Shown here piece by piece: positions 39,879-61,508 of a DNA stretch of 64,000 nucleotides. The stretch spans positions 14,632,001-14,696,000 of the forward strand of contig CM119380.1 of the NCBI GenBank assembly GCA_051294905.1, read 5' to 3'. The notes under the pieces were generated by a model. That model did not search any database. It was not told the DNA's origin and was given only the letters and a program-made list of their open reading frames with translations. The translations under genes and the position numbers were made by a program. The stretch is from Botryllus schlosseri (Eukaryota). Position 1 is the first letter of the stretch. Every line of letters begins with the position of its first letter.

Positions 39879-39887
39879 TTTTGCAAC

Positions 39888-41693: not shown

Positions 41694-43308
41694 TATCATT
41701 GAACCAAAGTCTCCGATATTTTCTAACGCTATCAAGATCAAAGCAAAGAGTAAGAAAATAAAGTACCTGCAGTTACCCCAAACGTTGATTGTCTTATTGA
41801 CCGAGTCTCTTGTCACCCGTATTCTAATATGAGCCGCCGTCTCGAGCGAAATAAACTTCGCCCGTCTCATTACAGACACCTGATTAGGCTTAGGTCAGAC
41901 GGTCAGAGCCTTCAGTAAAGCAGTAAAGGTTCGGATTTAAAGCCTACCGAAATTACTATCGGTAATGTTACGTCACAACCCGTACAACTTGTATTACGTA
42001 GGATTCTATTGTGATCAGGGAATGACCTTCGCGTCAGTAAACGTGAACATAAACGTACATTTGTTGTGTTGAAGGCGCGATTTATTTATGATCATGAATA
42101 ATTAGAATTTCCGTAGAAGCATCAATGATTTCACATCGTTAGTGAGAGCCGCACGGAGAGCAGTCGAGAGCCGCATGCGGCTCGGAGAGCCGCGGTTGAG
42201 AATCACTGCTCCAGCCCATTATCTGCGTTATTTCAAGGTTTTCGATCCACCTTTTTGGGGTAGAGAATTTGTGTAGTTCGGAATTCTTGTATAGTTTGGG
42301 ATTGACTTTTTTGATCTTTGTTCCCAGTTCATAGATTGCATGCCTATGCCAAATTTCGGTCGGGCATTCGATCTTTTTTAGAGTCGCAATTTTTTCTATA
42401 TCGCATGCTTTTGCGAGGGACTCAATGTCGGGTATTCCGAAGCCCCCGTTTTCTTTTTCTGCGATCATTGATTTTCTGGCAATTGCCTCCATCTTTTCTG
42501 GTGACCATAGAAAGCCGAAGTACATTCTTTCTAGTTCTTTTCGGTCTTCTTTCGGGAGTGGAATGACTCTGGCGTTGTAGACGATTTTTGTCGTCGCCAT
42601 CGAGTTCAAGATTGCTTTCTTGCCTGCCCAAGTTAGCTCTCGATTTTTGTAAGCATTTAGGGTGCGTTTTACTTTCATCTTGTTTTCATCCCAGGTTTTG
42701 TGTATCTGGTTTGTCCCGAAATATTGACCTAGGATTTTTATTGTTGGGTGTTTTAGGTTTTCGTATTGGTCGATATTATATCCTCGTGTTCGATTGATTT
42801 GTAAAATCTCAGTTTTTTCTGGGTTAAGTTTTTGGCCAGTTGCTTTTTCGAATTTTTGGAACTCTCTGAATATGTGTTTGATATCCTCCCCTTTTCTTAG
42901 GAAGCAGGTGATATCATCCGCATATTGTTGTAGATTTATTTGTTCTTTCCCTATTTGGAATGGTCTGATTTTTCCATCTGCTTCAATTTGCCTTGCCAGA
43001 GGGTCGTTGCTTATGGAAAATAGTACCATACTTAGAGGGCAGCCTTGCCTAATGCCTCTCTCGAGTTTTATGGCTTTGGTCAGTGCTCCGTTTACCGCGA
43101 TCTTGGTGCTTGCAGTGTCGTATATGTTCTTTACTACGGAAATGTAGTGTTCTTGAATTTCGTATTTCCGCAGGATTTTGTAAAGGTATTTGTGGTGTAT
43201 TCGATCAAAAGCCTTTTCTTGGTCGAGGTTGACGATAATCAGTTCTTTTTTTCGTTCCTTGGCATATTCAATGGCGGCTCGTGTGTTTCGTAGGATATCA
43301 GTAATTTG

Positions 43309-43489
43309 AGTAGTATATAACAGCACGTTCTCATGCGGACCAATTAAATCGCAGCATTTGATCACGTGACTACTTTTGAATTTCAAATCAAACAGAGAAA
43401 AGCGCGCGAAAGAGTTATATCAATAGTGCTTCAATAGGGACAATGGGTGACAATATATGTCAATAACGGGCGTGACCGTCATTGTATTG
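43309..43489 (+). repeat. Left TIR of the Polinton
   Basis: 180/181 identical to the reverse complement of 62368-62548; looser similarity continues about 35 bp further. Confidence 0.96.
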
Positions 43490-43658
43490 ACAATGATTGT
43501 GTCAGCTGATTGTATAATGGGTGTTAATGGGTGTGGCTTAGGAGAGCGAACCGTGACAGCATAATGGGGTGTGTGCTAGCGAACGTTACGGTATTGTGCA
43601 ATGGTTAATACCATAGACAAGTCCAAAGCTAGTGATATTACACCATACACAGCTTTGA

Positions 43659-43868
43659 TCACGTACCAAATTTGTAATTATATATTTTTTTAGCATCACT
43701 ACAAATCATTCTTATTCCTATATACAGTCCAATTATTCCTATACAGCCATCCCATCGCAAGCTCCATCCCAGTTCCTCTCCCAGTGCTTGTCCAAATGTT
43801 CGAAGTATATTTTCGCTCGTTCTGGTGTTACACCCTCCATTGTTCAGGATTTGCAGTCTTCTGCCCAT
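43659..43868 (-). CDS. Possible small membrane protein, 69 aa
   Basis: ATG-initiated with a hydrophobic stretch GCIGIIGLYIGIRMIC; no other support. Confidence 0.25.
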   Translation of the reverse strand: MGRRLQILNNGGCNTRTSENILRTFGQALGEELGWSLRWDGCIGIIGLYIGIRMICSDAKKIYNYKFGT

Positions 43869-44195
43869 CTCGCCTAGCGTTCGTTGCTGTTGTTTTGATT
43901 AACGCGTCAAAGTGGGTACTTAGACCCACTCCAATCACGTGACTACTTTTGAATTTCAAATCAAACAGAGAAAAGCGCACGAAAGAGTTGTGTGTCCGTT
44001 ATTGCACAATGGGTAATAACCTAGCGATATTGCACCATACATAGCTTTGATCACGTGACAAGTTTGCAATCATATATATGTTTATTCCGCGATGGTGTGA
44101 TCATCATTGTATTGACAATGATTGTAGAAGAAGTTTAGGGGACTATTTAAGTCACAAATTTGATGCTAAGCCATTCAATACGAAATTGAGCGACG

Positions 44196-44522
44196 ATGGG
44201 AAGAATAGTGATTAACGATGTCAAATTCGAATCTCCAACAAATATTACAATGGACCAAACTTCAAAGAGTATAATAGTAACGGGTGTAGCGACGATAAAA
44301 TTTGAGCAGCAGTTCATGATAAAACGCCGTGAAGGATATACGTGGGTGATCATACGTGGCGAAGACAACGAAAAAAAATCAATGAAGATTCATGAGGAAG
44401 ATGTCCGCATAAATGGAAAGTGTATTACTATCAAACAAGGAACCGCCGTGGAATTAAACAGCCTATTCATGAAAAATTGTTACAGATTAGAAATGAGCGA
44501 CGCATCTCATCTCATACATTAA
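44196..44522 (+). CDS. Hypothetical Polinton protein, 108 aa, beta-rich
   Basis: ATG in good context, TATA-like TATTTAAG about 50 nt upstream. Confidence 0.6.
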   Translation: MGRIVINDVKFESPTNITMDQTSKSIIVTGVATIKFEQQFMIKRREGYTWVIIRGEDNEKKSMKIHEEDVRINGKCITIKQGTAVELNSLFMKNCYRLEMSDASHLIH

Positions 44523-44686
44523 TATATTTTTTGTTGTAGATTTGAAATGCGCTACGCATGTCATTTCATACATTAATCATATCATTCATTATTCTGTAAC
44601 CTATTTCTATTTACATGTATAATTAGATTGAATTATAATTTATTTGAAAGCAAGTGCGACAGTTCGAATACTATCATTCGATAGAC

Positions 44687-45166
44687 ATGCGTGCTTTGAA
44701 GCGTTTGATATATGAACAAGCAAAATTTAAGCAGAATGCTTACGAAGGGATCCGAGCAGGACCATTCGATGAAAAGAATATGTATAGTTGGTGGGCAACG
44801 ATCCAAGGACCAAACGGAACGCCCTACGAAGGTGGTGTGTTCAGATTATCAATCGAATATTCTACCGAGTATCCATTCAAGCCTCCTAAAATGCGATTTG
44901 AAACACGGATATTCCATCCTAACGTAAGCTGTAAAGGTACCATATGTGTCGATATTTTACAGAAGGAATGGTCACCAGCGATGACAACGTCCACTCTACT
45001 GATATCAATACGTTCATTGCTCGCTTCACCAAACCCTTATGATCCGATGGATCAAGAGAGTGCGGAAATGTATTTAAAAAATAAGGAACGTTATTTCCAA
45101 CTAGCTACTCAATATACCCGTAGACATGCAATGGAAGATACGCAAGTCACCCAGCAAGAAAAATAG
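44687..45166 (+). CDS. E2 ubiquitin-conjugating enzyme (UBE2D-like), 159 aa
   Basis: GP.GTPYEGGVF, YPFKPPK, FHPNV, catalytic ICVDIL, WSPA motifs; intronless; AATAAA at about 45229. Confidence 0.95.
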   Translation: MRALKRLIYEQAKFKQNAYEGIRAGPFDEKNMYSWWATIQGPNGTPYEGGVFRLSIEYSTEYPFKPPKMRFETRIFHPNVSCKGTICVDILQKEWSPAMTTSTLLISIRSLLASPNPYDPMDQESAEMYLKNKERYFQLATQYTRRHAMEDTQVTQQEK

Positions 45167-45275
45167 TGTTGTTTTAATCCACCGCGAGTAGCGTGGAATT
45201 GCATTATACATTCCGTATTGTTCTTGTAATAAATAATAAAAATCAACGTCTGGTTGCGTTGTTATTCGTCTGAAT

Positions 45276-45346
45276 GGGGACTTAGCTCAATGGTAGAGTA
45301 TCTGTCTTGCAAATAGAAGATACGGGTTCAATTCCCGTAGTCTCCA
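45276..45346 (+). tRNA. tRNA-Ala (anticodon TGC), 71 nt
   Basis: GGGGACT TA GCTC AATGGTA GAGT A TCTGT CTTGCAA ATAGA AGAT ACGGG TTCAATT CCCGT AGTCTCC A: all four stems pair, G3:U70, A73, A/B boxes, TTTT at 45351-45354. Confidence 0.92.
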
Positions 45347-45430
45347 CGACTTTTCTATTGATGCTGTATCTGACTAGAACACGAATGAGGAGCCGTAGTT
45401 GTTTTGCGATTTTATTACAGACATATCAAA

Positions 45431-45772
45431 CTAATAACAAGCATCATAAAATCGCGCGTTGTGTAACGCTTCGAATACGATTATATTTTTTACAACGATC
45501 GCATTCCCTTTAAATTCTATAAGAATAGGACAGGTACGCGGTAAACAGTAATGTTTGTCTTTGCAGACAGTGATTGTCGGAGATTCAATCTTACCGTAGT
45601 GAGGAACATGCAGTTTCTTCACTACGATCTTATTGGTACGATACATTATTTCACATGAGAAAGGAATAGTGATAGATCTCACTTTCGGTAATACAATCGT
45701 TTTTTCATAATACCTACGATCTCCATTACTACTCAAGCGTAGGGGACCAATACAAATGCGAGCCATAGTCAT
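45431..45772 (-). CDS. Hypothetical Polinton protein, about 111-113 aa, beta-rich
   Basis: TATA-like sequence upstream (~45810), AATAAA just past the stop. Confidence 0.6.
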   Translation of the reverse strand: MTMARICIGPLRLSSNGDRRYYEKTIVLPKVRSITIPFSCEIMYRTNKIVVKKLHVPHYGKIESPTITVCKDKHYCLPRTCPILIEFKGNAIVVKNIIVFEALHNARFYDACY

Positions 45773-45857
45773 GATTTACGTTCACATTCTTCTCCACAGC
45801 AAAATAGCGTATATAATAAGAATTCCAGAAATAACAGCGCGGTTGCAACGATAGTTA

Positions 45858-46598
45858 TTATTTCGATTTCTTCCATTGAGATTTTATCCAACTGAAACTT
45901 CTTTTTCGAATGAGATGATCGTGTTCATCCAATTTGAAGCTTGATGATATCGAACACTTTTGTCTCTTATCTAGTTGTCGCAATTTACACATAAGATCGA
46001 AGAATTTGATTTCGTCGTTTTCACGTATGACGGTTCTGAAATTCTTTGCAAAAGCACTACCGTCTTCAAAACACCAACTGATTTGATCGTCACTAACTGC
46101 ACTTATGAGAACAGTTTTGGATTTTACGTCTCGTTTGCGTTTGAGTGCTTGCGAAGCAGCGTCTTCTCGTAAATGAAATTTCAAATCGGCAGAGTTACCA
46201 CTATAACACTGCGCAAACATGAGTAGGTTTTTTGTATCTTTACGAAAGCTTTTTAATAGCTCACACATATCATCATCGAGTAGATGCCTATCATAAAATA
46301 CAAATCCGGAATCGCGAGCTTCAGGATCATTTTCTTTTGTGTTATTTGGACATGAAAAGCCGTGACCGACGAAATATATGAAGTTTATCTTGGCGCTACT
46401 ATCGGCCATCGTTTGAAGCTCTCTGGAAAAATTTCCAAGAGTGGCTTGCTCTTCACGCAACACTTTGATATCTTCAGTCTTGAATTTGAATTTCTGTACT
46501 AAGATATCTGTCATAATCTGAATGTCTTGTAACGTTCCTTCATTTTCGACATGGTGCGGCTTTCCGCGATAACACATCGATACTATAAGCGCATTCAT
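45858..46598 (-). CDS. Metacaspase-like cysteine protease (peptidase C14 / caspase-hemoglobinase fold), 246 aa
   Basis: NALIVSMCY...GTLQDIQIM...F.F..EDIKVL...ATLGNF...FIYFVGHG (His) ... MFAQCYSG (Cys) ... VLISAVSDDQIS...GSAF follows metacaspase order; TATATAA about 35 nt upstream of ATG 46598. Confidence 0.85.
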   Translation of the reverse strand: MNALIVSMCYRGKPHHVENEGTLQDIQIMTDILVQKFKFKTEDIKVLREEQATLGNFSRELQTMADSSAKINFIYFVGHGFSCPNNTKENDPEARDSGFVFYDRHLLDDDMCELLKSFRKDTKNLLMFAQCYSGNSADLKFHLREDAASQALKRKRDVKSKTVLISAVSDDQISWCFEDGSAFAKNFRTVIRENDEIKFFDLMCKLRQLDKRQKCSISSSFKLDEHDHLIRKRSFSWIKSQWKKSK

Positions 46599-46662
46599 GA
46601 TGACACTGACTAGATCCCGAGCAATAACCACTTATATACTCCGATGAATACACACGAATTTA

Positions 46663-46980
46663 TTAAAAGCGATTTCTCAAAAATTCCCATAATTTTAGTT
46701 TACGAAAAACGACAAGTTCACCGCGGTTACGACGAATAATTCTATGCTTCGACAACACATCTATATACATACAATTTTTAGGAAAACGCACTGGTATCCA
46801 ATCAGACCCGCGGAAAATTGTAACTTCGTTATCATGCGGGTAAATGCGTATGTGAAACGGCTCGAAAGAAATTCTATGAATACGATTTGCATTCATGACA
46901 ATAATTTTTCCTTGGACTTTCATGTAGGCCTTCTCATCATCTCCAAAGTATTCTATGATGGTGAAACTAGTTGCTCCCAT
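46663..46980 (-). CDS. Hypothetical Polinton protein, 105 aa
   Basis: Tightly packed between protease and metacaspase, same strand. Confidence 0.55.
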   Translation of the reverse strand: MGATSFTIIEYFGDDEKAYMKVQGKIIVMNANRIHRISFEPFHIRIYPHDNEVTIFRGSDWIPVRFPKNCMYIDVLSKHRIIRRNRGELVVFRKLKLWEFLRNRF

Positions 46981-47414
46981 TTCAAGATTCTAACGAAGTC
47001 CACTACGATATCGTCGTTCTCTTTTCGATCATCACCGAAGTGATCCAAATACTGTAGTGTGCTCATACCAGTAGAGCGTTTGACGATATATGCAATTGCA
47101 TGAGCTCCACAAGCGTCTGACCTTTCATGCTGTAATGGTTTTATTGAGCTAGTATAATTTTCGGGATCAAGGAAACTCGCAATCTCAATCCTGAATGGAG
47201 TGATACCCAGACTATCGTGAAAATGGGTTTCATATTGATCAGCATATATGCAAACCCAGTGACTACCTTCCTTGTGACTTTCATCATAATTGATCACAAT
47301 TGAATAAGGAGGTTTTGGGCGCTGAGGGAGTTGATCAATAGGGAAATTCCCTAGATAGTGTTGTTTCGTAGCATGGTAACTATACAATATTTCATCTATT
47401 TCTTGTCCGTTCAT
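46953..47414 (-). CDS. Adenain-like maturation cysteine protease, 153 aa
   Basis: GSHWV (His), HDSLG (Asp), LQ...SDACG (Gln, Cys); start overlaps the capsid stop as ATGA. Confidence 0.93.
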   Translation of the reverse strand: MNGQEIDEILYSYHATKQHYLGNFPIDQLPQRPKPPYSIVINYDESHKEGSHWVCIYADQYETHFHDSLGITPFRIEIASFLDPENYTSSIKPLQHERSDACGAHAIAYIVKRSTGMSTLQYLDHFGDDRKENDDIVVDFVRILKWEQLVSPS

Positions 47415-48688
47415 ATCACGGTCACCGTGCGAGCTTGGCTTATTTCCAGTATTTTTTGAAATTCCATAAAGCACAGCAGTGTCGTTTCGCTCTCAACACC
47501 TGCCGCAGGAAAGGTGATTCGAAGACTGATCGTTCCACTTTTCTGCAGCTCGAAGCAGTCATCTAAATCGTCACCTCGCAAATTATATGCTAGAAGCGTG
47601 TATCCATTTGCGAACTCGGAAGGGGAAATCAAGCCTTTTTGTCGTTCGATGGCACCCATAGATTGAATGAGATTTAGGTAGGCCTCGGAATAATGATTGT
47701 TTTCAAAATCAAGTTCGTAGCCACCTTCCGGCATAAGGAAACCATTTACTTTCAATTCAACCCGATTCATTTTATTATGAATAAAATTATATGGGTTCTT
47801 ATCGAGTGCTCCTTGGAATGCCTCAGTTTTCACCATGGCTATAATCAAACGTGTCGGCAGGGTTCCCGAATACAGATTACCAATATCGATTTGAGTGGTG
47901 TTAGCCGCAAAAGTTCGAGTCAGCAGCTTCATGTCCATAAAGGGATACCTAGCCGGTGCGTCTACCATCAAGGCAGATTTTACATCTTCTGTTACCCGCA
48001 CTCCACATAGGTGCAATTCTTTTTTGATGATTTTGAAATTGCTGGTAGCGGCTCCAAACAGAAAGAAACTTTTCGGATTCAATGTCAATTCGAACTCTAA
48101 CGGAACCTCGTCCAAAATATAGCGGTCTTGCAAACACAACCCGTGATGTATTTTACCGCGAATTTCAACGACTTTGCTCCCGGCATACGGCAAACTTCTC
48201 GCCTTATGACCTTTGTTAACCGCATCATTGCCTAGGCCCGAATCATCCAATTGCTTCTCTGTGTCTTTGACCCATCCTTGTGTAAGAAGCGTTGTCTCTT
48301 GCACGTCGTGAGGTGTGAACAGATAGTGTAAGTAGGCCGAATAACATTGTAGCTTCACGTCTTGTTTCAGGGTATGGTTCCCGACTTTGATGTGAAGTTG
48401 AGAAATTAGAGAATCAAGAATGTTATTCACAACTCCAATGCTGTCCGTGGCAGCTAGATCCGCATCGCCTTTCAATAGTTTCAAGCGAAATAAAAAATAG
48501 GATTCGCTTAAATCAATAAAATCGTCACATCCTTCATAGCGGTAAATAATTACGCTTGCGTTGTCCGACACAGGCGGAATCTTAATGATCCGTTTCTTCT
48601 CCACGCTTGTTTGGGTAGGTGGGAGTTGAAAAAGATCCAAGCTAGGATGTACGCCTTCGGCAGATTTCGCGTGAATTAGCTCCGTCAT
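47411..48688 (-). CDS. Major capsid protein (double jelly roll), 425 aa
   Basis: Polinton-type start LDLFQLPPTQTS, P+LIIAMV...F.G....NP+NF.H, C-terminal GT+SL...F; position in the morphogenesis block. Confidence 0.9.
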   Translation of the reverse strand: MTELIHAKSAEGVHPSLDLFQLPPTQTSVEKKRIIKIPPVSDNASVIIYRYEGCDDFIDLSESYFLFRLKLLKGDADLAATDSIGVVNNILDSLISQLHIKVGNHTLKQDVKLQCYSAYLHYLFTPHDVQETTLLTQGWVKDTEKQLDDSGLGNDAVNKGHKARSLPYAGSKVVEIRGKIHHGLCLQDRYILDEVPLEFELTLNPKSFFLFGAATSNFKIIKKELHLCGVRVTEDVKSALMVDAPARYPFMDMKLLTRTFAANTTQIDIGNLYSGTLPTRLIIAMVKTEAFQGALDKNPYNFIHNKMNRVELKVNGFLMPEGGYELDFENNHYSEAYLNLIQSMGAIERQKGLISPSEFANGYTLLAYNLRGDDLDDCFELQKSGTISLRITFPAAGVESETTLLCFMEFQKILEISQARTVTVI

Positions 48689-48738
48689 CTTTCGCGAGTC
48701 TGCTAGCTAATGAAAAAATAAAGTAGGGAGAGTCCTAT

Positions 48739-49107
48739 TTAATCGAAAATGTCCCGACGGCGCTTTTTCCGTTTCGTGGTCTTTTTTCTAGGTGCCTTTC
48801 TCTTGCCTAGGAAGTTGTCAAGAGCTTTGCTAGCTGCTTGTTTACCTCTTATTTTGAAGCTTTCACCGACGTTTTGCCCACGCAATACGTCAGAAGCTAC
48901 TTCTGCTCCTGTATGGAGTAGCTGTTTGCCGAGAGCTTTCGCCCCTTTTGATATCAATGGTACAACACTTCGTCCCAAACTACGAAAGAGATTTCCTAAA
49001 CCGTGTCCTCTTTGCACTCGTCCTCGAAAATAGTTTATGCCATTACCACTTTGCACACGATAGTATTGTTGAAAGGCATCGCGATCACAACAGTAATGTG
49101 CTCTCAT
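48739..49107 (-). CDS. Conserved Polinton virion protein with QxGxG motifs, amphipathic helix and basic tail, about 122 aa
   Basis: QSGNG and QRGHG followed by LGNLFRSLGRSVVPLISKGAKALG; C-terminal RKKTTKRKKRRR. Confidence 0.75.
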   Translation of the reverse strand: MRAHYCCDRDAFQQYYRVQSGNGINYFRGRVQRGHGLGNLFRSLGRSVVPLISKGAKALGKQLLHTGAEVASDVLRGQNVGESFKIRGKQAASKALDNFLGKRKAPRKKTTKRKKRRRDIFD

Positions 49108-49834
49108 GATGACGTAAAGCAAGTGTGATATCAATCATGGACCCCTTCAGATTTATAGCCGTACCTTTATCGTCTTTGATACTAATCTGAATTCGACGAG
49201 CGTCTTCCGTAATCATAGGGAAAAAGTATATTTTTTCGAATATATGATGTTGATATTCATTGACACTACTCGTAATGGGGATGTTTCGTAATAGCGGAGC
49301 TTTCGTGTCCCCGACTGATTGCGGTCGAATGAGATCGGTATAAATTAATAAATTGGTGATAGGCGTAATGGAATCCCTCAGAGTGATCTCTGAAGTTAAA
49401 TAATTCCCTCCTAGCAGCTTTTTCTTCCTAAGCTTTCCATACACGAAAACCGGATTTCTGACTCTGGTTGGATTCTTCAGGAAATTAGGAAACGCACCCG
49501 ATTTGTAAGGTGGAATGACTAACATACCAGTAGAACTTCCTAGCTGGTTAATATATACTTGGTCCTGCGTGCGATTGATTCTATCAATCAAACTTTTGAA
49601 GTCATAATAATTACCCTTGGGGTAATAATAATGATTTTTACTTCCCACTTGAATCAGAGGCGATGTTTTCTCATCCTGAAATTGCCATAACAGAGCGTCG
49701 AAAGCAGGTAAAGTAGGTTGGAACTCGTTGCGAATCGAGAACTCCGCTAGGCCCAGTTCGTATTTTCCTGCAATCGGTCGTGCTAGCTCGAGAACAAAAT
49801 CTGATTCCAAACTGCTAATGTGAATGTATTTCAT
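49085..49834 (-). CDS. Minor capsid (penton-like) protein 2, 249 aa
   Basis: C-terminal LLIYTDLIRPQSVGDTKAPLLRNI...ISIKDDKG motif typical of Polinton pentons. Confidence 0.8.
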   Translation of the reverse strand: MKYIHISSLESDFVLELARPIAGKYELGLAEFSIRNEFQPTLPAFDALLWQFQDEKTSPLIQVGSKNHYYYPKGNYYDFKSLIDRINRTQDQVYINQLGSSTGMLVIPPYKSGAFPNFLKNPTRVRNPVFVYGKLRKKKLLGGNYLTSEITLRDSITPITNLLIYTDLIRPQSVGDTKAPLLRNIPITSSVNEYQHHIFEKIYFFPMITEDARRIQISIKDDKGTAINLKGSMIDITLALRHHESTLLL

Positions 49835-50661
49835 AGTGCGATACCGCGCTTTCGGAATTGAAGTACAGCGCTCGATGGAGCGCTTCGAAACGGAATTTCA
49901 CCCCCTTTGTGATCCAGCAAGGAAATTTTTACCCGTTCCAATCTATTTATACTTAGCGGAAGAAAGAAAGGTTTTACGTAATATTTTGAAAACACCTTCT
50001 TATCTCCTTCGACTTTTACAACTCGTAATAAACGCTGTAGTGAACCGCTAGACTCTTGGGGTTCAATGATGTCGCAATGAACGTATACGAAATCGATTTT
50101 CGACAAGGGTCGTACATCAAAATTGAGATGTATTGTCTTGTCAGTAAAAAAGTATGCGGATAGCTCTGCTCTATTCTTCGGCAATATGAAACGTAGGAGC
50201 GTAAGGGTAACTACCGCCAATTCTAGATGCTCAAGTGTCCCAGTATAATCGTACTCTCTGGTGTCGATTCGATATCGCGTATCCTCTCCCGGTCTTGCAC
50301 TAGCTGCAATGTTTTTGTGTGGAATCGAAACCGTCAGGCTATCACTTTCAGGAAAACACTTGACTTTCACATCGGGATTAATGCTCTCCAACGATTTAAA
50401 CATGTCATATACAGATTCATATTCACCAATTTTGAACTTCAATCTTCTTGTGACTTCACTGGGACCCATAATGTCGAAACCGTAGTAGCTATTTGTGATT
50501 GGGATCCGTTCGTTAAAATCGGTTGGGAAGCCAATCTCAGTCAACGCGACTTCGCTTCTTTCTACATTTCTGGGGGTGTCTAGTTCGTTGGTGTAAACCG
50601 CAGCTGTATTTTGTGGAAACCTGTCCATGGAGGCATTGGAAAATAACGTAATATAACTCAT
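49831..50661 (-). CDS. Minor capsid (penton) protein 1, 276 aa
   Basis: YITLFSNASMDRFPQNT...EVALTEIGFP start and VYVHCDIIEP...LLRVV...ISLLDHKG end. Confidence 0.85.
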   Translation of the reverse strand: MSYITLFSNASMDRFPQNTAAVYTNELDTPRNVERSEVALTEIGFPTDFNERIPITNSYYGFDIMGPSEVTRRLKFKIGEYESVYDMFKSLESINPDVKVKCFPESDSLTVSIPHKNIAASARPGEDTRYRIDTREYDYTGTLEHLELAVVTLTLLRFILPKNRAELSAYFFTDKTIHLNFDVRPLSKIDFVYVHCDIIEPQESSGSLQRLLRVVKVEGDKKVFSKYYVKPFFLPLSINRLERVKISLLDHKGGEIPFRSAPSSAVLQFRKRGIAL

Positions 50662-50870
50662 AGTTTGGGTATCTTTGGAGCCGGTAACATATATCCCACA
50701 CACGATGATAACAGCGACACCCAAAGCTCTTTGTTGTCTTGCACGACACTCAAATTATACAGCGAAAAACTCACGATGAGCAGTATAATTATAACTTGAG
50801 CAATGAATTGATAAAAGTTACGGTTCGACGATATCTTTTTGATCGACCCAGGTATTGAATTCCGGTCCAT
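50658..50870 (-). CDS. Small two-helix membrane protein, 70 aa
   Basis: FIAQVIIILLIVSFSLYNL and ELWVSLLSSCVGYMLPAP; stop overlaps the penton start (ATGA). Confidence 0.7.
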   Translation of the reverse strand: MDRNSIPGSIKKISSNRNFYQFIAQVIIILLIVSFSLYNLSVVQDNKELWVSLLSSCVGYMLPAPKIPKL

Positions 50871-51822
50871 AATTCAACCACTTCACTAAAAACTGACTGC
50901 GTTTACCACGCCGTCGTCTCTTTATAATCTTTTCGACTTGCCATTTTTGCGGTTCAGTAACGGGTTGAATTTCTTGTCTGTAAAATTGTCCGTCAATTAT
51001 TTCGTTATTGTAATCACGTAAGCGATACGTTGGCGGATCTCCTTTCATGGCTTTGACAATGTAAAATATCTCGGGTTGCCAGTTGGGTCGACTAGACTTC
51101 TCAAACAGATTGCGAATTTTCGAGATGCGTACAGGGGTCCCGACCGCTAAAGTGGGTAGTTTGGAGTCGCGAAATCCATACATTTTTTGCCAAATGCTTT
51201 CTTGATTATGTCTATTAACTTCACTAGGAGGGATCCCTAACGAGCGGTGTCTGGTGTGATTGTACGAATAGACCATATCATCTAGCACATCGATATAATT
51301 GCTGGTGTTATTTTTCGTGAAATAGCGGTAGAAGATTTGACGGAAACTACGGATAGCCCTTTCCGCAATCGAAGATTTCAATTCGCTTTTCGTGTAAAAG
51401 TACCGCACCTTGTTTTTTCTGAGAAAATTCTGAAAAGCTCGACTCGAGTATTCTGTACCTCTGTCTGTCTGTAGCACTAATGGAAGGCTCTCTTTGAAAA
51501 CTTTTTTGAAAGCAGATATCATGTTGTCACTCGATTTATTTTTAATCGGAATCATCCACACATACTTGGAGAAAACATCAATAATAAGAACGATATATCT
51601 AAATCCACGATTGTATTTTGAAATAGACTGTACGTCGATTAAATCGCTTTGAAACTGCGCTCCGATCCCTGACACAACAACTTGACGACGTTTAAATCTT
51701 TTTCGAATGGGAAAGTGATAGGTATAACTATCTTGTCCCTTCAACCACTCGCTGTCTTTCTGTAGGTAAGCACCCCTATAAGAATTGGGTTTTTTGGGAT
51801 CGAAGTAGTCTAGTTTGTCCAT
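50818..51822 (-). CDS. Retroviral-like (rve) integrase with C-terminal chromodomain, 334 aa
   Basis: QSDLIDV, LQTDRGTEY, SIAERAIR (DDE); WQVEKIIKRR...FLVKWLNYGPEFNTWV (chromo). Confidence 0.96.
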   Translation of the reverse strand: MDKLDYFDPKKPNSYRGAYLQKDSEWLKGQDSYTYHFPIRKRFKRRQVVVSGIGAQFQSDLIDVQSISKYNRGFRYIVLIIDVFSKYVWMIPIKNKSSDNMISAFKKVFKESLPLVLQTDRGTEYSSRAFQNFLRKNKVRYFYTKSELKSSIAERAIRSFRQIFYRYFTKNNTSNYIDVLDDMVYSYNHTRHRSLGIPPSEVNRHNQESIWQKMYGFRDSKLPTLAVGTPVRISKIRNLFEKSSRPNWQPEIFYIVKAMKGDPPTYRLRDYNNEIIDGQFYRQEIQPVTEPQKWQVEKIIKRRRRGKRSQFLVKWLNYGPEFNTWVDQKDIVEP

Positions 51823-52274
51823 AGCTTCCCAAAGTAGCGTTGATTGGGCTTTTGTTGACGTGGAGTATCGAGTTCTTTCCAGTTAAGCGGAGGTTTGAGG
51901 TCGACCTTTTTCTTTGCTTTTTTCTTGGGTTTTTTCTTCTTTGGAGTATCTCCCTCCTGTTTAGTAACGCTCCAATTAAACGCGTGCGGGGGCCCCGGCG
52001 TCGCGTTTGTGTCATCAGATGGTGGCGCGCGCGCTGCGTCTGCTTTAATGACGGGCGGCGACGCGTTTTTATCGTCAAGTGACGAAGCGTTTGCGAGCGC
52101 TTTTATCGTCGCGTCATTCTTTCTTAGGTTTCTCAAGACATTGATACCGTGTTTGTAAAGCGCTAGTTTTTGCACGCGAGTCAAATCCGAGTCTCTGATT
52201 TTGGCAATATGTTTGTCAAATTTCCTTTCGTATCCATCTTTTGTTAGTAGCGGTGGAAAATAGAGCTCACGCAT
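51810..52274 (-). CDS. Basic hypothetical Polinton protein, 154 aa
   Basis: Packed between core genes; Lys-rich tail ending PPLNWKEL. Confidence 0.65.
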   Translation of the reverse strand: MRELYFPPLLTKDGYERKFDKHIAKIRDSDLTRVQKLALYKHGINVLRNLRKNDATIKALANASSLDDKNASPPVIKADAARAPPSDDTNATPGPPHAFNWSVTKQEGDTPKKKKPKKKAKKKVDLKPPLNWKELDTPRQQKPNQRYFGKLWTN

Positions 52275-52680
52275 TTCTCGTCAGTCCGCCCAAGAGGCTT
52301 CCCAGTATCGGAATAGCGGCACTCAAAATGGCTAGGAACGGAATAACGTTAGATACAGTATTGAATCAAAGTTACACGTATTTACCCGAAAGAAAGCCAC
52401 CTCTTTGCAAAACTTTGCGCCTGCCTTTTTGAGTTTTGCAACACAGGACCTTCCGTATACTGGCTTTGTGTTTTTTCAATTTAGATTTTCTTGCGTTAGA
52501 AATAGGTACATCGCCCGCCACCAGGTTTCGAAGACACTCGCACACACTAGCGACAAATTCCTTATGCTTCAATAACTGAATACGTTCGGGGTTTTTAGCC
52601 CTCCGTAAAGTTTTCAATTTGGTAAGATGATCTTTTAAACGTTTTTTCAAAATGAGTCTTCGCGCGTCCTTAGCCATCAC
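52267..52680 (-). CDS. Conserved Polinton virion protein, spliced (exons 52680-52386, 52331-52267), 119 aa
   Basis: SVCECLRNLVAGDVP...LQRGGFL; GTAAAT donor, CTAAC branch and TTCCTAG acceptor give ...GGFLSAILSAAIPILGSLLGGLTRNA. Confidence 0.8.
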
Positions 52681-52712
52681 GAATGATGATTATCGTTCGA
52701 GCAGCGCGCTAT

Positions 52713-53333
52713 TTATTCCAAATACACAGTCATGCGTTCGTCCGGAAATATGTTGGTACGAAGTCGATACTTTTCCGGTGTCTCTTGGGTTAAATCAATG
52801 GCAATATATGAATAAGGTTCGCGAGTTGCTCTTTTGTATGCTTCTGTAAGCATAGTAGGATTGTCCGGGAACATTTGCCGTGAAAGGTAACGTATTTGTG
52901 AAACGTCACGTGGATTTTTAAACACCACAATATAGCTAGCGCTGAGAGTGACGTCACGAAAACCACCGCCTCGGTGAAATATGTTCTGGACTAATAGGAT
53001 TACTGAGACATTATTATGATGGGAATGACGTATGAATAGGTCCCTCGCTTGTTGTGCTTCCGTCATCATGTCGTCTAGTATTATCAGAGTGTGTCCATTA
53101 CCACCCTGCTGTAAATGTTCTAACTCGCCTAGACCTTGGTGGAATTTCACACCCTTCATTTTATCGTATAACGGCTGATAATTATTGTACAGCCAAATAA
53201 TCTTCCTTGGATAAGGCGCGATGATCTTCTTGGCATTTTGCACAAGGCGATAGGCAAAACATGTCTTACCGCAGCTCGAAGGTCCAGCTATGATCATCCT
53301 GAACGGAGAATTTAAGACACGTGCACGCTCCAT
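52713..53333 (-). CDS. A32/FtsK-like genome packaging ATPase, 206 aa
   Basis: Walker A GPSSCGKT, Walker B IILDDM, HSHHNNVSVILLVQN, FKNPRD. Confidence 0.95.
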   Translation of the reverse strand: MERARVLNSPFRMIIAGPSSCGKTCFAYRLVQNAKKIIAPYPRKIIWLYNNYQPLYDKMKGVKFHQGLGELEHLQQGGNGHTLIILDDMMTEAQQARDLFIRHSHHNNVSVILLVQNIFHRGGGFRDVTLSASYIVVFKNPRDVSQIRYLSRQMFPDNPTMLTEAYKRATREPYSYIAIDLTQETPEKYRLRTNIFPDERMTVYLE

Positions 53334-53360
53334 TTTTATTACAAAACAGACAACATTTTA

Positions 53361-56300
53361 TTACAAAGCAAGCGGTACAGTATGAATCCCATCACTCAAT
53401 ACAATTCTTTTATAGTAACCGTATGATAGAGCGGAACGATATTGATGATATGTATATATATCTCCCTGAAAGCAACGGAATCCGGAGTTATACCCTCCTG
53501 ATATAGAACGGTTTTGCAATACACCTTTGAAATCTTTGAAAGTTTTGCGGGCCGTTTTACTCAAACCTTTCGATGAATATTTATCTGTATCACCCGAGCA
53601 ATAGTAGGTTTTTGAATTGAGGCCAACAAACCCCCGTCCACTCCATTCTACTTTAAACAAACCCGGTGTTCGCTTAGAGTAATTATGAGCAGCGACACAG
53701 CACGGTTCATCGATTTTGAATGCGACCGGGTCCCTCTCGAAGTCTGTTTTATGCTTAACGCACGCCTGCTGAACCAACCACTGATCATGAACTTCAAAGA
53801 ACTCTTTACGCTTTGAAGGTATGATCAATGAGTAGATAGAATCAGCTGATATCGCTAAATAACAGCTGTCGGTGTCAAGTTCAAGATGAAATTGATCACA
53901 ATCGTTTATGTAGACGTGGAGGAAGTCATACATGAACGACAACATCCGTTGCTTACTGTGATTAAATATGAAGAAGCCTACGATGACGGGTTGATCAAGT
54001 TGAGTCGTATCGGGCCGTGAGGTTACTTCAATTAAGTCCGAATCAATTTCATCAGCGTCGATAAAATTCGGTTTTTTGATGAGCGCTTGAACTTCTTCGC
54101 AAGTCACATATTTGTGATTTTTATATTTGGCTGGATTTTGTATAGTGGTTCCGAAAGCACTATTTCCAAGATTCTTGAAGGTTAATGCCTGCATTTCAAG
54201 TGCATGGTCTCTAGGAATAACGTCACCTTTACGCCGTAGCGTAGTTACGCGATCTACGAAGTTGCGAAATAGTCTTTTAGGTTCATATTCCAAACATTGA
54301 TAAACACGTGTGACCACCATTCCGTGACGCAAGTACCAACTCAACAAGTCGGTAGTAACCAATTGCTTTTCGATGAAATAACTGGACGCGAGCGCTTTTT
54401 TTGGAAACTTGACTTTGTTTTCCCTTGCGTATTGAGCCATATGCGGACCGATATCACATTCATTAATTTCGATGTGCTTAAAGAAAGGCGGTAACTCTTC
54501 AAACTTAGATTTCAAATGATCTGGGCAGTGCGCGTCGCATTCTATCGCACCGAAAAAGCGATTGTTAACGACTCGATCGAGTATTTGTTCTTGCGATAGT
54601 AAATATTCTTTTGTCACATTCCTTTGTAAATGTGCAACGAGGCGCGCAATGTCTGGATCGCGCTTCATTGCTTTCCATTCACATTCGCGCACTCGAATGA
54701 CCTGATATCCTAGGCGTTCAAAATAGGCGGTGGTTTCTTCGGTTTTAATGCGTCGATTATGATTAATATTTTGATTATTAGATATACAAGGACACGAGTG
54801 CCACCAACATCCGTCCATGTTGAATATTAACTTCCGCTCCGCTGAGTATCCATCTACGCTAATTCTACGGGCTCCCAGTTTCACTTGCGGACCGTTCCAA
54901 GCGTGACGAATCGGAATACCGCGAACAATGCTTTGATAAGTTAACCACTCGAGTTCGATCATGGACGGATAAGTCTGTTTTCTATGAAATTTCTGTTTCA
55001 CTTCATCATACAGCCAACGGGTGACATATCCAGTTGGCATATTGAGATCAATGGCGTGCAAATATAATGCGTTGCTGTCATACCCTACTATAGATTTCAC
55101 GTCTTTGGCTGCGTCTCCATACTTCAAAATGCGAATTTTGGTCTCGTCTGCCATTGCATACCGGTTTGTAATTTGTGCCAATCCACCGATTAAGTTATTA
55201 GTTACAGTGTGATGGAGATCGGCATTGGCTTTATTGAATAAAGCGATTTCCCACCTTTCATCGAACATAAGTCGATTAGCTATACTCGGTAAGCTGACGT
55301 GATTTTTGAACATGTCAATCCCCAGTTTTTTATAAAAGTCGAAGTGGTTATTTACCGCGACGAGAAAGCCGACCACATCACATTCATTGTAGTATTTTAA
55401 AAAATCCCTCATTGTTTTCATATCGAGACGCTTCCAAGTATCGACGCATTCTTGGTATTGTTCAGCTGTAATATTATGCCCGCGAAGACTACTATAAAAG
55501 CTATCGTGTGGCGGTAGCGATGTTTCTTTCAATTTATCAATATGCGTCATATATTCGTATGGAAAGAAAAATTTATTGTTTACTCCATCACCGTACACTT
55601 TCAAATACGCATCCAGGCTATATCCCGGAGCGAGGAATAGAGATATATCTAGAAATTTCAATTTATTTGTGGAGATAGTGAGGTAACTGCTGTTTCGCTT
55701 CAATACAAAAAAGCCGCTCTCCTCTCGCAAAAGAGCAATCAAATATTTTTTACACAGATTTAAATCGTAGCGAGCCGAGTTGAATCCGATTACGGGTATT
55801 TGATCTAACCACGTTTCAAAGCGATGATACAACAACTCCAGGTACGATCGCGTTTTAATCGGATCAATCACTTTACGTTCTTCAATCAAGTCGCGAAGAG
55901 CGGTCAACTCGGTGTCATATATAGCACGCATTTGCGAAGACGCAATTTCTTGAATTTCATGAAGCTTATCGACCATTTCTTTAATTAGATCACGCGGGTT
56001 GCCATTGGAAATAAATGTAGTTGTTTCGTTCGTGACATTATCACACAGTGAGACCGAGAGCGGGACATGTTTACTGGTAAATTTTACTTTGGCTGTATCG
56101 GGCTTGAGATTTTCTTTTACTAAGAGACTCTCAAAGTCAAAGCAAATTCTGAATTTGTAAAAACGTTTTTCTTTACTAACAAATATACCTTCATTTTCCA
56201 AATCTTCAAACACCGTCGCTTTAGGACGATAAACACCAGAACCGTAGCGATACCTTTTCTCAGAATTACAATGATTTTTAATATGTCGTTTTAAACTACT

Positions 56301-57227
56301 TTTCAAGGTAAAGAATGTTTTACACGAATCACACATAAAAGTAGACGTATAATTCTCTATATTCAAAATTAAAGAACAGTGATTTTCGAGCATGTGAATA
56401 TGAATTGTGAGTCCAGACGCATTGGAAGTACGACGCAAGACCGTGGTTTGTTCACGTTTCTCGTAAAGCAATATTCTAACGTTAAAACACGCTTCCACTT
56501 TCGATAGTTGGTCGAGGGATATACCATTGGCAACTGAAATTCCGTAACGATTTTCAAATTGCGTAGTCAATTGAGAAACATGACTTTCGTCACGTTTTTT
56601 AATTAATCTAAATGAGACGCATCGAAACAGACAAAGATTATCTGTATATGGTACACCTTCACGATTACGAATAAAAGCACTGATATATCTACATTTGGAT
56701 AATCTTTCCATTTCTTCTGAGACAACGCCCCCGCTAAGTAAAGGTCTTTCCATTTCATACAGGAATAAAGTAATGTGTAGCACCTCCGAACAAACAAATT
56801 TTGTATCCGGTCTGACTCGATTCGCATAATCGTAACCGGCCGATAAATCAATTGCATTTCTAAACGAATCAAAATCTTCACGCGATATGATAGTTCTTGG
56901 GACATCGAGGACAGCTTGCGATGATTGGGGGTGAAAATACGTATATCGCTCAGACTCGCGATTATATAGTAGATACCCAAAGCCATAATTTATTTTAAAT
57001 TGTCTAAATCGTTGCGGGTATATACTTGCGATACGCGCGTGAATGTCTGCGGGGTCTCGTTCAATCATCCGAATATTGACTATATGTCGCACGCGATTTC
57101 TCGAAGTCCACGTTGAGTCAATGATCGAATCGTAGTGCTCTTCAATTACTTCGACGGCGGCATCTTCAAAGCCCAAGGATTCATCGACGATCCAATCTCG
57201 ATCCAAATATCGCCTGCGTAGAGTCAT
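53361..57227 (-). CDS. Protein-primed family B DNA polymerase (pPolB), 1288 aa
   Basis: Exo I FDFES, Exo II GFNSARYD, Exo III YNECDV, Pol YDSNALY, KNLGNSAFG, LDTDS; C2H2 finger and VSR-like insert. Confidence 0.97.
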   Translation of the reverse strand: MTLRRRYLDRDWIVDESLGFEDAAVEVIEEHYDSIIDSTWTSRNRVRHIVNIRMIERDPADIHARIASIYPQRFRQFKINYGFGYLLYNRESERYTYFHPQSSQAVLDVPRTIISREDFDSFRNAIDLSAGYDYANRVRPDTKFVCSEVLHITLFLYEMERPLLSGGVVSEEMERLSKCRYISAFIRNREGVPYTDNLCLFRCVSFRLIKKRDESHVSQLTTQFENRYGISVANGISLDQLSKVEACFNVRILLYEKREQTTVLRRTSNASGLTIHIHMLENHCSLILNIENYTSTFMCDSCKTFFTLKSSLKRHIKNHCNSEKRYRYGSGVYRPKATVFEDLENEGIFVSKEKRFYKFRICFDFESLLVKENLKPDTAKVKFTSKHVPLSVSLCDNVTNETTTFISNGNPRDLIKEMVDKLHEIQEIASSQMRAIYDTELTALRDLIEERKVIDPIKTRSYLELLYHRFETWLDQIPVIGFNSARYDLNLCKKYLIALLREESGFFVLKRNSSYLTISTNKLKFLDISLFLAPGYSLDAYLKVYGDGVNNKFFFPYEYMTHIDKLKETSLPPHDSFYSSLRGHNITAEQYQECVDTWKRLDMKTMRDFLKYYNECDVVGFLVAVNNHFDFYKKLGIDMFKNHVSLPSIANRLMFDERWEIALFNKANADLHHTVTNNLIGGLAQITNRYAMADETKIRILKYGDAAKDVKSIVGYDSNALYLHAIDLNMPTGYVTRWLYDEVKQKFHRKQTYPSMIELEWLTYQSIVRGIPIRHAWNGPQVKLGARRISVDGYSAERKLIFNMDGCWWHSCPCISNNQNINHNRRIKTEETTAYFERLGYQVIRVRECEWKAMKRDPDIARLVAHLQRNVTKEYLLSQEQILDRVVNNRFFGAIECDAHCPDHLKSKFEELPPFFKHIEINECDIGPHMAQYARENKVKFPKKALASSYFIEKQLVTTDLLSWYLRHGMVVTRVYQCLEYEPKRLFRNFVDRVTTLRRKGDVIPRDHALEMQALTFKNLGNSAFGTTIQNPAKYKNHKYVTCEEVQALIKKPNFIDADEIDSDLIEVTSRPDTTQLDQPVIVGFFIFNHSKQRMLSFMYDFLHVYINDCDQFHLELDTDSCYLAISADSIYSLIIPSKRKEFFEVHDQWLVQQACVKHKTDFERDPVAFKIDEPCCVAAHNYSKRTPGLFKVEWSGRGFVGLNSKTYYCSGDTDKYSSKGLSKTARKTFKDFKGVLQNRSISGGYNSGFRCFQGDIYTYHQYRSALSYGYYKRIVLSDGIHTVPLAL

Positions 57228-57409
57228 TTATGCTATCTGTAAAAACATAGAACATTAGAAATTGAGAAGCTTATTTCAATCACAGTTTTGCTTACCGTTT
57301 GCGCTTGTATGATACGGTATCCAGTCGTAAAGTCGTGTGTCAACAAAGTATTGAAAAAATATTACCTATATTTACTCTATATCTGTAAAACAAAGCACAA
57401 TTTCACTTA

Positions 57410-57820
57410 CTAGAAAACGAAATTATATCTCAAGCGCAATTTAGATTGGTTTAGACCGTACAGAAACATGAACTTAATTCTGTCCAATCTAGCAATCTCA
57501 GTATCACGAATATTCGAGTCTGTTTTATCGTCACACAACAGTTTTTCGATATCTTTGATCACGTTTTTTGCAATGACAAGAAAATTTTTTGTCCAGTCTT
57601 GTTCGAATCCTTCCATCGAAATAAGGCGGTTCCACATCGCTTGCATTTTCAAATGATCGTCCATCATGTGTTCGAAGTAAGAACCAATATCTTGACGAGG
57701 ACGCTTTCGTGAAGGTTCTTGTGGATCCAGTAGACTTTGATAGAAGGCCGACATATCGCTAATTTGTGTCATGTCTCTCTGAGTGGTGGATGCAGCTATA
57801 TCGGCTAAGTTATCATTCAT
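57410..57820 (-). CDS. Hypothetical Polinton protein, about 136 aa, possibly spliced
   Basis: Open frame preceded by a strong acceptor (TTTTGTTTGCAG at 57830); a GTAAGT donor overlaps its stop. Confidence 0.55.
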   Translation of the reverse strand: MNDNLADIAASTTQRDMTQISDMSAFYQSLLDPQEPSRKRPRQDIGSYFEHMMDDHLKMQAMWNRLISMEGFEQDWTKNFLVIAKNVIKDIEKLLCDDKTDSNIRDTEIARLDRIKFMFLYGLNQSKLRLRYNFVF

Positions 57821-57981
57821 AATGTTAAGCTGCAAACAAAATTCGAATTAGTGACAATCGTTCATGCAAAAAAATATATACATCAGCCAAGTTTTTCAGT
57901 CATAATGTCAAGGTGCAAACAAAATTCGAATTGGTAACAATCGTTCATGCAAATAACAATCGTACAAGCAAAACATATTAT

Positions 57982-59580: not shown

Positions 59581-59944
59581 CTCGAATACTTTTCACTGAT
59601 TCGCTCAGATTTAGTGATAACTCATTTCACATTCGGCTAATCTTATACGAAAATGCTTCGCGCCAGAATCACATAAGAAAAATGTTCGCTCACTAACGGA
59701 CAAACATTAACCGTTAGGATTTGAAATTGTTGATAGATAGTAACAGCCCGTTCGAACAAAAGACATTCCCAACCGTCGTTTTCGCTTTGTTGGTAGAGCA
59801 AACAATGCATTGAGTGTTTGAAAAGCAATGAATAGTAGACGGTAAAACGAACCTCTATCAAATTTCTTAAAACAAAGTAAACTCAGATTGAACTCTAAAA
59901 TAAATGGAAGTGCGCGAAAGTAACGTTCGTTACAATTCATACCA

Positions 59945-60201
59945 ATACTTTCAACGAATTTTTTAACCAACAACATATTCAAACTCTGGAATGTCATAAA
60001 TTTAAATCAAAGTACGACCAATCATTTCAAAGTTGGAAATCTACCAATCAGAATACAGTATCGTGTTCTAGACCGATACTTTCAATGTATTTTTAACCAA
60101 CAACATATTCGAACTTTGGAATGTTGTAAATTTAAATCAAACGACCACCAAGCATTTCAAAGTTGAAAAATCTTCCAATCAGAATACAGCATCGCATTCT
60201 A
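59945..60201. promoter_or_regulatory. Tandem 126-bp duplication with CCAAT boxes in the divergent-promoter region
   Basis: 59945-60070 ~ 60076-60201; CCAATCAGAATACAG in both; TATAAAA at 60208-60214 ahead of the BIR gene. Confidence 0.6.
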
Positions 60202-60256
60202 CACAGCTATAAAAGCTCCCATTCTTATAAATATTTCAGTTCTTCAATATAACGAG

Positions 60257-60610
60257 ATGGTGTCTATTAAGCCGTTAGGTGCACATCAGGCAATGAAGAA
60301 TGAAGTCGGTGATATCGTTTATGAAATTTGTAATCGAAATGCGAAGCAGAACGAAGCTGTGTTTTTCAATATGAATTTTGAACGTAGATTACGTTCGTTC
60401 GAACCTTACAAAGAAAATTTCAACAGTAGTGCCTATCAATTAGCAGAATGTGGATATTTTCATCTCGGCTTCGAAAATTTAGCCAAATGCTATATGTGTG
60501 GAAAACTATTCGAAAATCTCTGTCATTGTGATAATGTATGGGTTGAGCATGAACAAGTGAATAGTCGTTGTGCTTTACTAAGTAAAAGAAATGACAAGAC
60601 TCATTCTTAA
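60257..60610 (+). CDS. Single-BIR inhibitor-of-apoptosis-like protein, 117 aa
   Basis: RRLRSF...LAECGY...exact Cx2Cx16Hx6C zinc motif (CYMC...EH...RC); no RING. Confidence 0.9.
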   Translation: MVSIKPLGAHQAMKNEVGDIVYEICNRNAKQNEAVFFNMNFERRLRSFEPYKENFNSSAYQLAECGYFHLGFENLAKCYMCGKLFENLCHCDNVWVEHEQVNSRCALLSKRNDKTHS

Positions 60611-60691
60611 TCTATTTTCTCGTGTGAGGATTCATGTTTTCACTGAATAATAATAACTATGTTGTGTTTTCTATATTAATTTAGAATCAAT

Positions 60692-61276: not shown

Positions 61277-61508
61277 ATTACTGGTTGAATATGTGTTAAT
61301 GGAAAATAAAATGGTAAATTCCTATTTGGTCTGAATAATAAATCTCATCCTACATTTGTGTCTCTCTCTCTATTCTTAAAGCTTTGGTGTTAGAAAAAAT
61401 TGTGTCAGAATCACGAAGCTAGTAGCTCTATATCAGAACGAGACGGTAACGAGTATGCACTGAAAGCACAACCTAACAAAGTCGAGACAAGACAATACAA
61501 ATCACCAT

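Follow-up and report, generated by a model that had tools for sequence, protein, structure and literature searches.

A prodomain-less metacaspase-family gene with an altered S1 pocket in a Maverick/Polinton element of an animal genome

Metacaspases are described as found outside metazoans and are divided into type I, with an N-terminal prodomain, type II, with a long linker between the p20 and p10 parts, and type III, in which p10 precedes p20 (PMC3734836). Some giant viruses that infect protists encode metacaspases too, with roles that are unsettled (PMC10583209). Here we describe a metacaspase-like gene that lies inside a Maverick/Polinton element in a 64,000-nucleotide (nt) stretch of contig CM119380.1 (GenBank assembly GCA_051294905.1, positions 14,632,001 to 14,696,000, forward strand), the whole of which is called the window below. 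An earlier note on this DNA, made from its letters, had read the gene as a metacaspase-like protease in an animal endogenous virus and had taken metacaspases to be absent from the metazoan repertoire, a statement that agrees with the literature (PMC3734836). The reading that we prefer, and to which we give a probability of roughly 0.6, is that the gene encodes a compact, prodomain-less protease of the metacaspase family and serves as an accessory gene of a recent, intact-looking animal Maverick, its product cutting host death or immune proteins.

The open reading frame (ORF) matched Pfam Peptidase_C14 (PF00656) at E 1.4e-12, with 48.2 bits against a cut-off of 21.4, and phmmer recovered from PDB Arabidopsis metacaspase-4 (1.9e-7) and metacaspase-9 (3.1e-7), Geobacter GSU0716, and yeast metacaspase-1; together, the Pfam match and the PDB metacaspase matches rule out a chance resemblance of motifs. 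The His-Cys dyad in metacaspase motif order that the earlier note had picked out (YFVGHG and FAQCYSG) is present where it had been located, and His79 and Cys131 are invariant in all 60 aligned relatives. This alignment of the window protein's relatives (A2, 60 sequences) is the basis of the sequence profile and of the AlphaFold2 model used below, and the outgroup residue counts use 53 sequences. Searched against PDB sequences, the A2 profile matched metacaspases and GSU0716 only, with Yca1 at 2e-73, and no caspase or paracaspase was among its PDB matches at E<=1e-3. An NCBIfam scan gave only a sub-threshold caspase-type match, and a PHROGs scan gave nothing useful.

The AlphaFold2 model has a predicted local distance difference test score (pLDDT) of 93.6 and a predicted template modeling score (pTM) of 0.90. 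Its best 29 Foldseek matches in PDB were all metacaspases or GSU0716, with E down to 1.1e-14 and TMq 0.64-0.75 (0.73-0.75 for AtMC9 and the type I metacaspases), and below the metacaspases came a group with TMq 0.52-0.60 made up of MALT1 (4e-8, TMq 0.52-0.56), legumain, and caspase-7 (1.6e-7, TMq 0.59). The earlier note had named such a structural comparison as a check on its own reading; metacaspase structures rank above caspase and paracaspase structures, and the expected fold is present. Among the predicted viral structures of BFVD, giant-virus metacaspases ranked first, led by Fadolivirus (4.9e-18, TMq 0.87), with Clandestinovirus, Heterosigma akashiwo virus 01, and Pyramimonas orientalis virus among the other leading matches; no polinton-like virus or adintovirus appeared by name among the top BFVD matches. 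The model also places two short strands (residues 141-143 and 149-151) between strands 123-129 and 161-166, and in metacaspases two extra strands give an eight-stranded sheet and a monomeric protein (PMC4357240). By its predicted fold, its dyad, and its Ca2+ site, described below, the ORF product is a metacaspase-family protein, and its description as a protease of a non-animal type holds, with both profile and predicted fold placing it among the metacaspases and apart from the MALT1 paracaspase and animal caspases.

Three other family assignments were considered and rejected. Animal caspases (C14A) have an active-site motif of their own, a basic S1 pocket for Asp, and a dimeric six-stranded core, and membership among them is argued against by the missing profile match, the lower standing of caspase-7, and the FAQCYSG sequence around Cys131. 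A MALT1-like paracaspase is argued against by the absence of fused Death/Ig domains and by the weaker MALT1 match, and a bacterial orthocaspase (p20-only and prokaryotic) by the p10-like part and the eukaryotic element, GSU0716 being a weaker match.

The window protein is a single chain in which a p20-like part is followed, across a short linker, by a p10-like part, and it is single-domain by Pfam. In the AlphaFold2 model and the profile alignment it begins at the first beta-strand, lacking both an N-terminal prodomain and a long linker, and the profile alignment pairs its p10-like part with the p10 of Yca1 and TbMCA2. It thus falls under none of the definitions of type I, II, or III (PMC3734836) and looks like a type I core minus the prodomain. 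Exact look-up of the metacaspase ORF and of the candidate capsid ORF of the same element found neither on record.

Residues of the Ca2+ site and the S1 pocket were mapped to TbMCA2 by profile alignment, the TbMCA2 chain numbering being offset by 20. The allosteric Ca2+ site of TbMCA2 consists of Asp173, Asp189, Asp190, and Asp220 (PMC4357240), and all four have counterparts in the window protein (Asp96, Asp108, Asp109, and Asp138), which are also kept in nearly all members of its clade. The S1 pocket of TbMCA2 is formed by Cys92, Asp95, Ser156, and Asp211 (PMC4357240); the counterparts are Thr22, Asp25, Val77, and Ala129, so that one of the four, Asp25, is kept, and in the outgroup the same positions hold Cys (48/53), Asp (53/53), Ser (51/53), and Asp (53/53). 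An acid on loop L5, Asp or Glu in 48 of the 53 outgroup sequences, is replaced in the window clade by Cys, Val, or Ser, and a Trp precedes the replaced position in six of nine core-clade members. Two of these changes had been noticed earlier and are borne out by the alignment, namely Ala for the Asp of the D-x-C motif, and GTLQD (residues 21-25) in place of the N-terminal GCxND, where the Cys has become Thr and the Asp is kept. At the sequence level the shift of the S1 pocket that had been suspected from these two deviations extends beyond them, to three of the four pocket positions and the L5 acid.

Since the acidic S1 pocket usual in metacaspases is lacking, the window protein is regarded as a variant metacaspase. 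The derived pocket residues are common to relatives from 87% down to 39% identity, and for this reason the altered pocket is, as read from the alignment, a conserved new state and not decay. With a single acidic residue retained in S1, the P1 preference would probably differ from, or be narrower than, the usual Arg/Lys.

The open frame is likewise retained in relatives at 87-39% identity, with one in-frame stop in one relative (L010). Synonymous divergence is saturated in all usable pairs, and pairs that involve L010 are invalid; non-synonymous (pN) and synonymous (pS) differences per site were therefore compared directly. They were 0.35 and 0.87 between the window gene and L001, and 0.39 and 0.79 between the window gene and L009, pN being less than half of pS in both pairs.

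Only four close relatives, 87-50% identical, came from a word-based search of 5.8 billion proteins. When 1.84 billion representatives were searched with a profile, 4,623 matched at E<=1e-3 and only six at E<=1e-30, and by this fall in numbers the window protein is placed in a small, tight clade within the large metacaspase family. None of the best 20 matches of the clade profile came from NCBI or UniRef, and only two carried a source name ("hypothetical protein"); pattern scans of IMG/VR (A1, A3, and P0015) and of JGI metagenome contigs (A1) found no relatives. Two of the relatives, P0001 (87%) and P0002 (63%), come from short read-archive contigs whose genes follow the order seen around the window gene, namely the end of a capsid gene, a protease of ~150 amino acids (aa), an ORF of ~90-105 aa, the C14 gene, and an ORF of ~111-115 aa. 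A far more divergent sequence (P0015, 27%) lies on a 4.5-kb metagenomic contig (L008, ENA ERZ28548067), where it adjoins homologs of the window integrase and polymerase, the integrase homolog being 36-45% identical to that of the window in a match of two pieces. By this gene content, L008 is a second, distant polinton-like element carrying a metacaspase, and the pocket of P0015 is canonical, with Ser and both Asp retained.

In a neighbor-joining tree the window clade and P0007 grouped together in 100 of 100 bootstrap replicates, and a 10-member clade including P0015 in 89 of 100. Two other sequences (P0010 and P0022) are found on AT-rich contigs that bear genes of giant-virus type (TFIIS, Rpb6, YqaJ, and AP endonuclease), and further near matches are long proteins from marine-protist transcriptomes. 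From this pattern we infer that a polinton-like lineage may have acquired the metacaspase from the gene pool of protists and giant viruses and that the pocket was remodeled afterwards, in the branch to which the window gene belongs, a scenario that rests on the simple neighbor-joining tree. As a separate observation, in L005-L007 (Logan SRR312143xx-SRR312144xx) the metacaspase P0027 adjoins a weak UQ_con ORF and a compact set of lysine-biosynthesis genes, namely AA_kinase, DHDPS, a DapB-aminotransferase fusion, and Semialdhyde_dh.

The gene resides in an element that has an integrase and a PolB-type polymerase, long terminal inverted repeats (TIRs), and a 6-bp target-site duplication (TSD), as expected of Maverick/Polinton elements (Table 1). 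From the morphogenetic module, which comprises an A32-like ATPase, a cysteine protease, and a double-jelly-roll capsid protein, the ATPase was found, and the protease (E 0.024) and capsid (E 0.03) are weak matches. The element was inserted into, and splits, the reverse-transcriptase ORF of a long interspersed nuclear element (LINE), and the insertion looks recent, since the TIRs are 99% identical. BEL/Pao retrotransposons occur elsewhere in the window, together with hAT and PIF/Harbinger transposases. To our knowledge, BEL/Pao elements are restricted to animals, and by their presence in the window an animal host of the element is well supported. The setting in an animal endogenous virus that had been proposed for the gene is accordingly upheld, with the gene inside a Maverick/Polinton bounded by TIRs and TSD, in a genome with BEL/Pao elements.

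Table 1. Coordinates in the window of the metacaspase-like gene, the element that carries it, and the flanking sequence.
Feature	Coordinates	Strand	Remarks
Metacaspase-like (Peptidase_C14) gene	45858..46598	-	246 aa, uninterrupted, counted from first ATG
Catalytic His79 codon	46362..46364	-	within YFVGHG (residues 75-80); His in 60/60 relatives
Catalytic Cys131 codon	46206..46208	-	within FAQCYSG (residues 128-134); Cys in 60/60 relatives
TATA-like motif	46632..46638	-	~40 nt 5' of the metacaspase ATG; from sequence reading only
Maverick/Polinton element	43309..62548	-	19,240 bp; every recognizable gene uninterrupted; 0 stops/frameshifts
Left TIR	43309..43489	.	181 nt; 99% complementary to right TIR
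Right TIR	62368..62548	.	181 nt; 99% complementary to left TIR
TSD AATTTG, left copy	43303..43308	.	perfect 6-bp match to right copy
TSD AATTTG, right copy	62549..62554	.	perfect 6-bp match to left copy
3' half of split LINE reverse-transcriptase ORF	42139..43386	-	RVT_1 4.3e-26; listed ORF enters TIR by chance
5' half of same LINE ORF	62537..63199	-	RVT_1 7.9e-5
E2 ubiquitin-conjugating enzyme	44654..45166	+	UQ_con E 5.3e-47; first ATG 44687
tRNA-Ala (TGC)	45276..45347	+	between E2 gene and 113-aa ORF; Rfam 73.4 bits; ARAGORN
113-aa ORF	45431..45772	-	directly 3' of metacaspase gene; 111-115-aa ORF in same place in P0001 and P0002 contigs
105-aa ORF	46663..46980	-	directly 5' of metacaspase gene; 89-104-aa ORF in same place in P0001 and P0002 contigs
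Candidate maturation cysteine protease, 153 aa	46953..47414	-	weak: African swine fever virus S273R protease E 0.024; no Pfam match; relatives' contigs have a counterpart at this position
Candidate major capsid protein, 425 aa	47411..48688	-	weak: DJR-like_dom E 0.03, below cut-off; no PDB sequence match
Retroviral-type integrase and chromodomain	50818..51822	-	rve 4.3e-12, Chromo 3.7e-11
A32-like packaging ATPase	52713..53333	-	Pox_A32 2.5e-10
Divergent polymerase (candidate pPolB), 1288 aa	53361..57227	-	28% identical (E 1e-14) to PF03175 DNA_pol_B_2-bearing ORF of L008
Single-BIR protein	60257..60610	+	BIR 1.3e-10
Stand-alone Death-domain protein, 87 aa	62008..62271	-	Death 6.1e-11

The polymerase ORF gave no PDB match and, even when split in two, no Pfam polymerase match; its assignment to PolB follows from homology to the L008 ORF and is weaker than the assignment of the integrase. 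One described class of divergent PolB carries an OTU-like domain at its N-terminus (PMC8502044), and the window polymerase may belong to this class. The same ORF has a weak C2H2 zinc-finger match (E 0.0077) and a weak endonuclease-like match in its middle (phrog_13076, E 0.003).

Besides the metacaspase, the element carries genes for an E2 ubiquitin-conjugating enzyme, a single-BIR protein, and a stand-alone Death-domain protein, so that four of its genes belong to families active in cell-death or innate-immune signaling in animals, and together they look like an accessory set for cell-death and immune signaling. Given the invariant His79 and Cys131 and the kept aspartates of the Ca2+ site, the metacaspase is predicted to be a catalytically active, Ca2+-regulated protease. 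In the mechanism that we propose, the gene would be expressed whenever the element is, from a promoter belonging to the element itself, and the protease, with a P1 preference shifted or narrowed relative to Arg/Lys, would cleave host cell-death or innate-immune signaling proteins alongside the BIR, Death-domain, and E2 proteins. A host-directed role is favored because Death, BIR, and E2 genes lie in the same element and a separate candidate maturation protease is present, and the Death, BIR, and E2 genes make host death or immune proteins plausible targets. The direction of the effect, promoting or blocking death, cannot be read from the sequence.

Several points weigh against this interpretation. 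The functional link between the metacaspase and the BIR, Death-domain, and E2 genes consists in their co-residence in one element, the relatives' contigs being short. The tree behind the proposed origin is a neighbor-joining tree of environmental sequences only, free of a named reference set. Gingipain RgpB needs no more for Arg specificity than a single Asp on the counterpart of helix alpha1 and a Trp lid on the corresponding loop (PMC4357240), and by analogy the P1 preference of the window protein may be unchanged. The replaced pocket residues could also reflect weakened or lost substrate binding.

Among the other explanations, the one that fares best is that the protease acts on the element's own proteins, in virion maturation or in the processing of replication proteins, and not on host targets. 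The gene sits just downstream of the block of capsid and protease genes and is flanked by conserved small ORFs, and cleavage of viral proteins by a host metacaspase has been proposed for giant algal viruses (PMC10583209). The element already has a candidate maturation protease, however, and the gene is rare, at ~10 clusters among ~15 billion proteins; its rarity, the separate candidate protease, and the lack of papers linking metacaspases to polintons in the library searched place it outside the core morphogenetic module, and we regard self-processing as unlikely. Slightly less likely again is a pro-death or cell-remodeling effector that would aid release or spread, as with the ascovirus caspase, while the BIR protein restrains host caspases. 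The ascovirus caspase contributes to a modified apoptosis for transmission (PMC10583209) and is a weak structural match of the window protein (BFVD rank 25), and both BIR and Death-domain genes are at hand in the element; since the sequence does not give the direction of the effect, this alternative departs from cleavage of host death or immune proteins, the reading preferred here, in the sign of the outcome only.

The earlier note had also raised a dominant-negative role, and a non-catalytic decoy that binds and does not cut would accord with an S1 pocket in which three of four positions are replaced, with the replaced L5 acid, and with the occurrence of pseudo-orthocaspases in bacteria (PMC6426788). 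Known pseudo-variants, however, lose the His-Cys dyad and keep the acidic pocket (PMC6426788), whereas the window protein shows the reverse, with a dyad invariant in 60 of 60 sequences. Metacaspases are moreover monomers whose extended sheet blocks the interface used for caspase dimerization (PMC4357240), and a host metacaspase partner is not expected; the dominant-negative idea is thus disfavored, and a decoy appears quite improbable. Equally improbable is a neutral passenger of one element lineage on its way to decay, for which the narrow distribution and the in-frame stop in L010 could be cited, but which sits poorly with an open frame and motifs kept at 87-39% identity, the same synteny, and pN well below a saturated pS. 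Capture of a caspase or paracaspase from the host, to which the animal host and the other animal-type domains (Death and BIR) of the element might point, is scarcely credible given a family profile that matches neither group in PDB at the threshold above, Foldseek matches to MALT1 and caspase-7 at least six orders of magnitude below those to metacaspases (TMq 0.52-0.60 versus 0.73-0.75), and the presence of the metacaspase Ca2+-site aspartates.

The preferred reading, an accessory protease directed at host death or immune proteins, can be carried further. A lineage of animal Mavericks might possess a small module for taking over host cell-death and immune signaling, made up of the Death, BIR, and E2 genes and a metacaspase that came from the gene pool of protists and giant viruses and had its S1 pocket rebuilt for animal targets, one acid being kept and a Trp gained on loop L5. 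We consider this extension possible, with the odds against it. If true, this would make it the first metacaspase known to function within animal cells, where it would possibly mimic or compete with the paracaspase or the caspases.

The remainder of the window holds further mobile elements. A BEL/Pao long-terminal-repeat element at 17710-25421 contains an intact polyprotein of 2075 aa (18615-24842) and identical flanking repeats; more copies of its repeat lie at 7685-8462 and 15098-15607, and a second, partial BEL/Pao ORF spans 8590-10575. Segments 1-1579 and 15512-17090 open with 300 bases (1-300 and 15512-15811) that are 100% identical and 15,511 bases apart, and two ORFs of the same sizes (213 aa and 172 aa, no Pfam match) repeat at that spacing. 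A 71-nt near-palindrome (39738-39881) precedes a hAT-family transposase ORF of 663 aa at 39888-41879 (-), and an ORF of the PIF/Harbinger type (DDE_Tnp_4) occupies 6050-6874 (-).

Compared with known systems, the window protein comes closest in predicted structure to the metacaspases of giant viruses (Nucleocytoviricota), which are likewise virus-encoded and supply its best structural matches (E 4.9e-18 to 1e-14, TMq 0.76-0.87). They belong, however, to large-genome viruses of protists and not to a 19-kb integrating animal element, are 17-18% identical to the window protein in the top three matches, and differ in the pocket, the outgroup keeping the acidic S1 residues that the window clade does not. 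With the type I metacaspases (yeast Yca1, Candida glabrata MCA1, and Trypanosoma brucei MCA2, or TbMCA2), its best profile matches, the protein shares the fold, the order of p20 and p10 with a short linker, and the Ca2+-site Asp residues, but it lacks the prodomain, and in the S1 pocket Asp25 alone is retained. The type II metacaspases 4 and 9 of Arabidopsis are its best phmmer matches in PDB and top Foldseek matches, whereas the autoinhibitory motif of their long linker and their extra helical domain (PMC10235996) are missing from the window protein, and the Foldseek target coverage is only 0.47-0.60. MALT1, an animal Arg-specific C14 protease, belongs to the same superfamily but is a weaker structural match (E 4e-8, TMq 0.52-0.56) with no profile match, and the window protein has no Death/Ig domains in the same chain. 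MALT1 works in Death-domain-based immune signaling in animals, which is the setting that the window protein would enter.

The element itself resembles animal Mavericks and adintoviruses in its pPolB, rve integrase, A32-like ATPase, candidate protease and capsid, TIRs, and 6-bp TSD; the adintovirus survey, by contrast, makes no mention of caspase, metacaspase, apoptosis, or BIR. In the library searched, no paper joined "metacaspase" and "polinton", and "polinton" with "caspase" returned nothing relevant. Virus-encoded metacaspases were previously known only from giant viruses of protists, and the present locus adds a new carrier and an animal host kingdom. With it, the exchange of genes between polinton-like elements and giant viruses comes to include a cell-death protease. 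The locus also adds a new class of accessory gene to the Maverick/adintovirus repertoire and offers a defined protein for the study of viral metacaspases, one with a conserved catalytic centre, a rebuilt specificity pocket, and death and immune genes as neighbors.

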